Assembly (NCBI GenBank): GCA_964035545.1 | Contig: OZ037769.1 | Coordinates: 6,491,929-6,555,928 of the forward strand | Source: Bugula neritina | Taxonomy: Eukaryota; Animalia; Bryozoa | Reading direction: 5' to 3' | DNA: 64,000 bases | In this document: piece by piece, positions 28,701 to 31,700 of the stretch | Position numbering within the stretch: position 1 is the stretch's first letter | How the letters are laid out: every line of letters starts with the position of its first letter | The notes under the pieces: generated by a model | Told to the model about the DNA's origin: nothing | Seen by the model: only the letters and a program-made list of their open reading frames with translations | Databases searched by the model: none | Position numbers and translations under genes: made by a program

Positions 28701-31700
28701 TATAAATAACTGCCTAGTCCTCTAGTCCTTGTCACAACATAACCTGTCAAAACAATAAGCGCTTTAACTAGCCTGCCAATACATGTTAACTGCTTCTGGT
28801 ATTTTGTCACTGAAAACACGAACACACAAGTTTGTTTAGGCCACTAAAATCTTTCATTTTATTCAGCTAAAATCTGCAAATTCTGAGCACCAAGTAAAAG
28901 TTGCTCAACCACAATATCTAAACTAGCTCTGTTGTGTGCTTGAATACAAAATATAATTACGTTGTAGCATATTCCTTACGGCCGCCCTTGGTATGCCAGA
29001 AGCCTTGATTCCCGTGCAGCTGCTGTGGGTGAACCTGGTCACCGATGGCCTGCCAGCCACTGCTCTTAGCTTCAACCCGCCTGACCTTGACATCATGGAC
29101 AAGCAGCCCCGGGACCCTAAGGAAGGCCTCATCACCGGCTGGCTGTTCTTCAGATACATGGCTATTGGCAGTAAGTTGTCCCCCCAACTCTGTGTTTCTT
29201 AAATTTTCTTAGTTTGTCTGAAATTTTATGGCTGCCAATTCTGTGTACTGGAGTTTTGCTCTCTTTCCTTAAGATTTTTGTTAAGCAAGTCATAAAAATT
29301 GCTTTATTCAATTCAGAGATATAGTGTGTTAATTTAATAGACTCTTTGTTGTTTTGACCAAACAGTTCTTTTATCTGCATAGTGTTGAATGTTGCAGTTT
29401 ACGTCGGTGCTGCCACAGTTGGAGCTGCTGCCTGGTGGTTTATGTCCGCACCTGATGGACCACACCTCAACTACTATCAACTGGTACAGCTACTGTGCAA
29501 TTCTCTCTCTTGTTCATAGTGACTAGTTCATATATTTGATCTGCTGAGCTGATAACATTCTGTATTATACCCACTGTTTTTAAATGTCATACTGTTTTAT
29601 TATTGTACAATGAATATGTTTCCCACTGCCATGTTTACATGTTCCAATACCTGCTGGCTGCTATTACAGACACATCATATGCAATGTTTGGGGGAACCAG
29701 AAAATTTCGCTGGAGTAAGTTGTGAGGTTTTCCAAGCACCTGAGCCTATGACAATGGCCTTGTCTGTTTTGGTTGTCATTGAGATGCTTAATGCACTCAA
29801 CAGGTAAACATGTGCCATTGGTTGAGGCAGCGCTGCCTTGGCTAGCTAGCTGATTGGTTGAGACACTAATATGAGTATATAATTTTTAAATTGATTTGCA
29901 GTAGCAGTTCTTAGCACAAATTAATCTATTAAACAGCTTTCAGCCAATCGCTAGCTAGACATTACTGGTGTAAGTTTTCATACACTTACTAGTGGGTTAT
30001 ACTGAGTTCCTACTTGAGTGCTGTGAAACCTTACACCGTCCCTCAAAACATGCCAGCTTTCACTGATGTGATTACTGATTCCACACTATTGTCTTTGTTT
30101 AGACCCACCACTCGCAATGTTTAGCTCAGGCAGCAAATTTCTCTGGTGTTGATTGCAAAGTTTTTGACAGTGATATACCCCATGCGTTGGCATTGTCGGT
30201 ATTGGTTACAGTGGAGATGCTGAACGCGTTGAATAGGTATGATCACACGCTACCAGCCACCCTTCATCCCTCTCCGTAGTCATTCGGAGTTGTTAGCCTT
30301 TTCACGCTGGACACTCAGTACTAACTAGTAACAGCTAGCACTAGTATTAACAACTGTCCTTTTCCATGCTGCCAGTTGGCACTGCTTGCCCTGCAATGCT
30401 CCATTAAGCAGACAAAAAAGTGTTCCTAGTGACTAGATGATGTAGTGACCAGATGGTGTCACGCTGTAGTAGAGGTTTTCTTAGCACATCTCTCTGCTGT
30501 CCTCTCTTTCTAGTTTCAGTTGCTTCTAACATTAGCTCTACCTGTTGAGATGCACTGAATGTGTGAATGTTGTCTTTCTGTTCATAGTGTAGAATTTTAG
30601 ACCTGCGACGTGTGTAAAGGTTGATTGTGTGGATATGAAGATCAGTTTTAGCTGTTCATGTGACATTCTAAGTCTATCCTTTCTGTCCTGGCTAGTCAGT
30701 TTGTTATATTTTGTGCTATACTTGGTCTGAAAGCAGCTGCTGCATGCTTGACTAGATAGTTTGACGGTTTTCCAAAGTTAGAAGGTGTGTAGGCCATTAA
30801 TCTTTCATAGCGAGTTGTATTCCAAAATTCCTCCTAGTGGGTATTAAGTTTAGAAATTAGTCGACTATATTGACCTGTCACAGCATGTGTGGTGTTGTAA
30901 TAGCGACCTGCCTGAGCTAAGCAAGTATACATGCGTCACGCTGGCGCGCTGCTGAGACTGCTGCTGGTGGTGGGATCTTGGCAAGTTGGTGTTTTTCTTT
31001 TTTGTTTTTATACTTGAATTAATCGCATGCTACTTATTAAATACATTAAAATTCCATTTTCTGCTAAATGTTCTTGTGGTAACTTCAAGCAATTTATTTA
31101 TAGCGCACTGCGCCACTAACTAACTTCATTTGTATATATATAAACCATCTACAAATGTACTAATTGTAATATTGGTTGATCAACGGCCAATGTATTTTCA
31201 TGCAAACTGAACTTTTTTATAAAAATTAAATCTTGGGCAGTCTTTCATGCTGCTTGATGTGTTTGCAGTCTGAGTGAGAATCAGTCTCTGCTTTCCATGC
31301 CTCCGTGGGTGAACCCGTGGCTCGTAGGAGCAGTTGCCCTCTCAATGGCTCTCCACTTCATGATTCTACACGTACCCTTTTTGTCTGTAAGTAGTTTATT
31401 ATACATATCTATCTACATGTCCGTTTTAAGTTGCGGTCCATCTACCAAGCATGAGTTCTCAATCTTCCAAGTCTAGGCGAGATTTACAAATGGCGTGTGA
31501 TAGCAACTAGAGAGTTGCCTACTCATCGGTGTATGGCTTAAATGGGGTAAAAGAGCAAAAAGAATATACTTATGACAATCCACGTTCAAAGCACTTGGTG
31601 TTCTATATTATTCATTTTATTATATTTTTAATAAGGTTTTGAACACTGTAAGTTGCTCTTTCATTATATTAAAATGTGCTGCTCACTTTCATTTGCTGAG

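Follow-up and report, generated by a model that had tools for sequence, protein, structure and literature searches.

The SERCA gene in the stretch of Bugula neritina DNA analysed here (64,000 nucleotides, hereafter the window, to which positions refer) contains two tandem copies of an internal exon, A and B. We conclude that this is very probably an ancestral tandem duplication kept as a mutually exclusive pair, through which one gene would give two pumps. The pair and its constitutive neighbours are laid out as follows.

29398..29483, forward strand: constitutive exon upstream of the pair, encoding M7 and the start of the L7-8 loop; spliced to A in 4 runs.
29670..29803, forward strand: exon A, the main form, covering SERCA residues about 871-914, with E at loop position 879; both junctions found in 4 runs.
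30103..30236, forward strand: exon B, apparently the minor form, covering the same residues as A, with Q at 879 and an altered stretch at 892-899, the start of M8.
31269..31386, forward strand: constitutive exon downstream of the pair, encoding L8-9 and M9.
31730..31926, forward strand: last coding exon, reading through into a SERCA2b-like hydrophobic tail; read-through contigs in 4 runs.

A and B are 134-nt copies with AG at the 5′ side, GT at the 3′ side and the same open frame. Either exon alone keeps the message in frame; inclusion of both, or skipping of both, results in a frameshift. This anatomy had been proposed in a reading made from the sequence alone and was borne out in each of these points, including the equal phase and the frame arithmetic. 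The same sequence-only reading assigned the exons to the L7-8 loop and M8; the region was correct, and the extent was narrower: of the loop only the C-terminal part is included, together with most of M8. The B peptide aligned without gaps to residues 871-914 of rabbit SERCA1a, confirming in both exons the two loop cysteines (876 and 888) and the M8 glutamate E908, a site I ligand; these three residues were invariant across all 14 tabulated exon copies. As had also been noted, the DNA of the two exons is strongly diverged. Identity amounts to 82 of 134 nucleotides and 27 of 44 residues, and by codon position to 28, 35 and 17 of 44, third positions being the lowest. The differences concentrate between and around the cysteines and at 892-899; B is unusual at the start of M8, a stretch otherwise conserved.

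Matches of exon B in the PDB were all SERCA1 or SERCA2 (17 of 17), and the flanking exons are 59-100% identical to SERCA proteins. A search of the 216-Mb genome with the B peptide gave matches only at A and B, and the resemblance of the two is therefore not due to chance. SERCA is a single gene in this genome; after it, the best-matching P-type ATPase exon is 45% identical. No further duplicated exons were found in the alignable parts of the SERCA gene. B begins directly after an in-frame TAG, which explains its absence from the open reading frame lists, pointed out earlier. At its 3′ end the gene passes a possible donor at 31846 and continues into the short hydrophobic tail, which resembles that of Plakobranchus; no a-type last exon was found downstream. 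Positions 31810-31994 are invariant relative to L013, a close sister lineage that served as the reference for divergence of the window. Simple tandem repeats in the SERCA introns (22463-22919 and 25659-25928) produce low-complexity open reading frames.

Splicing was examined in the contigs of four runs, each from a different study and each recorded as no more than probable RNA; such contigs drop rare forms and so show presence, not absence. Exon A was joined to both constitutive neighbours in all four RNA-like runs (29483->29670 and 29803->31269). A GT-AG joint from B to the downstream exon (30236->31269) was present in run X4 only, carried by a single contig that extends 28 nt into B; the contig depth, a poor measure of expression level, was 192 for this joint vs 2107 for A. 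The junctions listed in the sequence-only reading were thus recovered on both sides of A and on the 3′ side of B; the remaining one, leading into B (29483->30103), was not seen in these contigs, from which rare forms are dropped. With the same proviso, no A-to-B or skipping joints were listed in the four runs. B is therefore spliced at its 3′ end in this species and looks like a minor form. Run X4 also showed a 64-nt skip (31176-31241) with TG..AG ends, inside an intron where L013 likewise carries insertions; this is probably strain variation or unspliced RNA.

A search with B retrieved the pair in several phyla. Tandem 134-nt copies of the same order, length and phase, with intact splice sites, were found in six further loci.

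L009, the gastropod Plakobranchus: tandem pair.
L012, the annelid tubeworm Lamellibrachia satsuma: tandem pair.
L006 and L007, mollusc-like loci: tandem pair in each.
L008, an annelid-like locus: four intact copies, 7715-10307.
L003, a truncated flatworm locus whose accession we take to be that of Protopolystoma xenopodis: tandem pair.

The exon is single in two other loci, L010 and L011. The single copy of L011 is divergent and has annelid-like neighbours; in that lineage gene duplicates could have replaced the exon pair. In the leech, four SERCA genes have been reported (PMC6987452). In L006, the exon after the pair is trailed by six decayed tandem copies (13437-14360) with 139-nt spacing and stop codons. 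Gene models of cuttlefish, two tapeworms and Elysia contain B-type or mis-joined copies, and public models of a flatworm (P0001), Plakobranchus (P0167) and a cuttlefish (P0180) wrongly fuse both copies into one protein. Four other animals have transcript-like proteins (P0174, P0176, P0182 and P0183) in which B alone, without A, links the previous exon to the next; A-only counterparts are P0184 and P0185.

Two elements in the intron downstream of B are predicted to pair with splice sites of the pair.

30908..30986, forward strand: intronic element E2, predicted to pair with the B acceptor and the first 31 nt of B (30093-30133).
30538..30555, forward strand: candidate intronic element E1, predicted to pair with the A donor (29792-29806) in a helix that crosses the E2 helix.

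The E2 helix has a predicted energy of -48.9 kcal/mol, vs -29.2 +/- 3.0 for shuffled introns in a fixed window; none of 600 shuffles was as strong, and the pair probability in the whole-region fold is 0.98-0.99. E2 lies in runs invariant relative to L013 (30871-30943 and 30965-31060), and the arms of the helix carry a single change, from G-C to G-U. Of the two pairings that a common docker for both exons would need, E2 gives a strong one with B and a weak, overlapping one with the A acceptor (z about -2). The E1 helix, picked from 60 tests, reached z -4.0 (3 of 600 shuffles); the element lies inside a 104-nt invariant run (30502-30605), and its helix is missing among the likely helices of the whole-region fold. 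Since the E1 and E2 helices cross, they could exclude each other. A local hairpin (30170-30179 with 30236-30246) can also pair the B donor with exon B at a probability of about 0.7; its 30170-30179 arm overlaps the stretch coding for the unusual residues of B. No match was found in Rfam.

Elsewhere the predicted pairing falls on the donor. In L006, L007, L008, L009 and L012, the donor of the last copy pairs with a mid-intron downstream site (z -3.6 to -4.2), compared with z +1.0 to -1.7 for control constitutive donors in those loci; first-copy donors are mostly unpaired, with exceptions at z -2.5 and -2.9. The idea of this helix arose from L007, L009 and L012, and L006 and L008 were checked afterwards. 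Finding it depends on the query window, the shifting of which loses some cases. At +7 to +14 the pair types change on both sides in a compensatory manner; the table of these changes was aligned by the pairing itself, and the weight is carried by the shuffles. No such helix was found at the B donor of the window or in the truncated flatworm locus, and no acceptor-masking helix was found outside the bryozoan in the loci compared. L008 has two downstream sites of interest: one near 11611-11634 can pair with the donor of copy 4 and weakly with that of copy 2, and one near 10596-10634 with the donors of copies 1 and 3; together they are a possible true docker system.

Because the helices cover splice sites, we infer that B would be masked, and kept off, by default. 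Competing pairing in Dscam, 14-3-3 and Mhc (PMC6071210) is similar in being long-range, in using the downstream intron and in having mutually exclusive crossing helices. The helices might activate B by docker-selector looping in the manner of insect Dscam and 14-3-3, or be bystanders to proteins that decide. These alternatives, which concern the splicing mechanism only, are rather unlikely in our judgement. Downstream dockers do activate exons in the known clusters (PMC6071210), and words of the RBFOX and QKI type show a modest excess in the downstream intron; the counts of RBFOX, QKI and MBNL words are too weak to name a tissue. However, the predicted helices described here sit on the splice sites themselves, covering the GT and +1 to +8 or the acceptor AG region, and their partners are mid-intron, not adjoining the next acceptor, which points to masking rather than activation.

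The copies fall into two classes by position. Residue 879 is E in 7 of 7 first copies and Q in 7 of 7 last copies, and residue 874 is M or T in first copies vs S or A in last copies. In all 27 species pairs, which are not independent of one another, the A-A plus B-B comparison outscored the crossed one. A tree of the 44 columns gave an A vs B split at 85/86, unstarred. Within-species pairing was rejected by the AU test for L006 (p 0.0006), L009 (p 0.03) and L012 (p 0.047). From these comparisons, a single duplication before bryozoans, molluscs, annelids and flatworms split appears very likely and is the best reading. These phyla separated over 500 million years ago.

The exons could also be mutually exclusive and yet have been duplicated several times independently, the class-like residues being convergent or homogenised. 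We consider this improbable. It draws on an AU test that does not reject independent duplication of the window pair (p 0.34) or of the flatworm pair in L003 (p 0.44), and on an A/B signal that is mostly in the first 12 residues, residues 13-44 giving none for the window. Ion transporters often show convergent duplication of tandem exons (PMC9741552), and the four copies of L008 show that new ones arise. Against this, order and the E/Q marker agree in every one of the seven loci, three loci reject within-species pairs, and the donor helix is common to mollusc- and annelid-type loci.

Relative to L013, neither exon shows a single change (0 of 134 positions in A and 0 of 134 in B), which leaves no substitutions from which to form a dN/dS ratio. 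Five neighbouring constitutive exons are 2.7-5.6% changed, all counted codon changes being synonymous, the last exon 0.5% and the introns 5-12%. B lies within the longest invariant run of the window/L013 alignment, 206 nt. The corresponding exon of a more distant relative (P0187) is 84% identical to B and differs at 7 of 44 residues, yet it retains the frame, the cysteine pair and E908, as well as the unusual residues that open M8. Such conservation indicates strong purifying constraint on both copies. It could be constraint on RNA alone if B were a regulatory or poison exon here, retained because of its RNA structure and spliced in beside A so that the transcript decays. The joint into B, which the contigs do not contain, the unusual residues at an otherwise conserved stretch of M8 and the constraint that pairing puts on the first 31 nt of B would fit this, but a relative that changes seven residues and still retains the coding features, the B-only sequences of other animals and the want of any listed A-to-B joint (in contigs that drop rare forms) make it highly improbable.

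Mutually exclusive use, proposed in the sequence-only reading, is instead supported by the frame, the A joints in 4 runs, the 3′ joint of B in 1 run, the zero divergence of B in the sister lineage and the B-only transcript-like proteins elsewhere; splicing out of B is seen, and B is undisrupted in relatives. Several further candidates were rejected: a second SERCA gene or an assembly duplicate by the single gene and the recurrence of the pair in L013 and other phyla, a decaying pseudo-exon by the zero divergence, and U2/U12 incompatibility by the ordinary GT-AG ends of the exon copies. Steric exclusion by a branch point near the A donor is unsupported, the A-B intron being 299 nt long with branch-like words 24-36 nt from the B acceptor. 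An N-glycosylation site particular to B (Asn-Phe-Ser, in its loop part) was dropped, as it is not kept in P0187.

We propose that the tandem duplication was already in place when bryozoans, molluscs, annelids and flatworms last shared an ancestor, and that the resulting two pumps would differ solely in the luminal L7-8 loop around the disulfide and at the start of M8, with E908 unchanged. A downstream intronic element is predicted to pair over a splice site of B and thereby make A the main form; the masked site would be the acceptor in the bryozoan and the donor in mollusc- and annelid-type loci. Displacement of the helix would turn B on in some cell type or stage; in the bryozoan, the crossing helix that hides the donor of A may be what displaces it. 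Nonsense-mediated decay may clear transcripts with double or no inclusion, as a backstop.

The sequence-only reading had the splicing switch the luminal face of the pump, and a change in luminal behaviour may be what the exchange achieves. The two loops would tune luminal regulation, through disulfide redox partners, tail contact or calcium release; ion selectivity should be unchanged, because the cysteines, E908 and the M8 core are kept in both forms. ERp57, ERdj5 and selenoprotein N mediate redox regulation of the loop cysteines in mammalian SERCA2 (PMC7603117), and in SERCA2b the luminal tail comes close to the L7-8 loop (PMC7423393). The most likely role is to adjust luminal regulation or calcium release to the cell type, a call that we regard as evenly balanced. 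More tentatively, and with somewhat more doubt than belief, the pair may be an undescribed, spiralian-specific switch more than 500 million years old with a conserved masking helix, by which particular cells (e.g. fast muscle or neurons) receive a pump with a different redox loop and different regulation or kinetics, in place of the SERCA gene duplicates of vertebrates.

Tandem exons spliced in a mutually exclusive way are already known. Those of ion channels and transporters (PMC9741552) are likewise old, homologous and of equal length, and are used one at a time, with the core kept and variable residues swapped; the main text of that study is without ATP2A, ATP2B or P-type ATPases, whereas the present case is a calcium pump and appears spiralian. 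The muscle myosin heavy chain clusters of lophotrochozoans (PMC3912159), in a different protein, are also old and shared across protostomes, tune one gene by exon choice and show lineage losses. Known splice variants of SERCA are vertebrate SERCA2a/2b and those of Artemia, C. elegans and Pinctada fucata (PMC3527596, PMC6987452). In the invertebrates one gene similarly gives several pumps, and the window gene too has a 2b-like tail; those variants, however, are C-terminal only, whereas the exchanged exon of the window gene is internal and encodes the luminal loop and M8. The literature covered, which lay mostly outside subscription journals, yielded no description of the pair, and databases may list both isoforms without comment. 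The SERCA pair is real and old, and apparently undescribed.

This internal switch adds to tail variation, the only kind described for the one SERCA gene of invertebrates in the papers covered. With the switch kept across bryozoans, molluscs, annelids and flatworms, work on expression and physiology in oysters, snails, cephalopods and parasitic flatworms would have lumped two pumps together. The swapped loop bears a disulfide whose role in the redox control of mammalian SERCA2 is unsettled, which makes the A/B pair a natural experiment. If molluscs and annelids have indeed retained the splice-site helix through compensatory changes, it would be an unusually old RNA structure in splicing.
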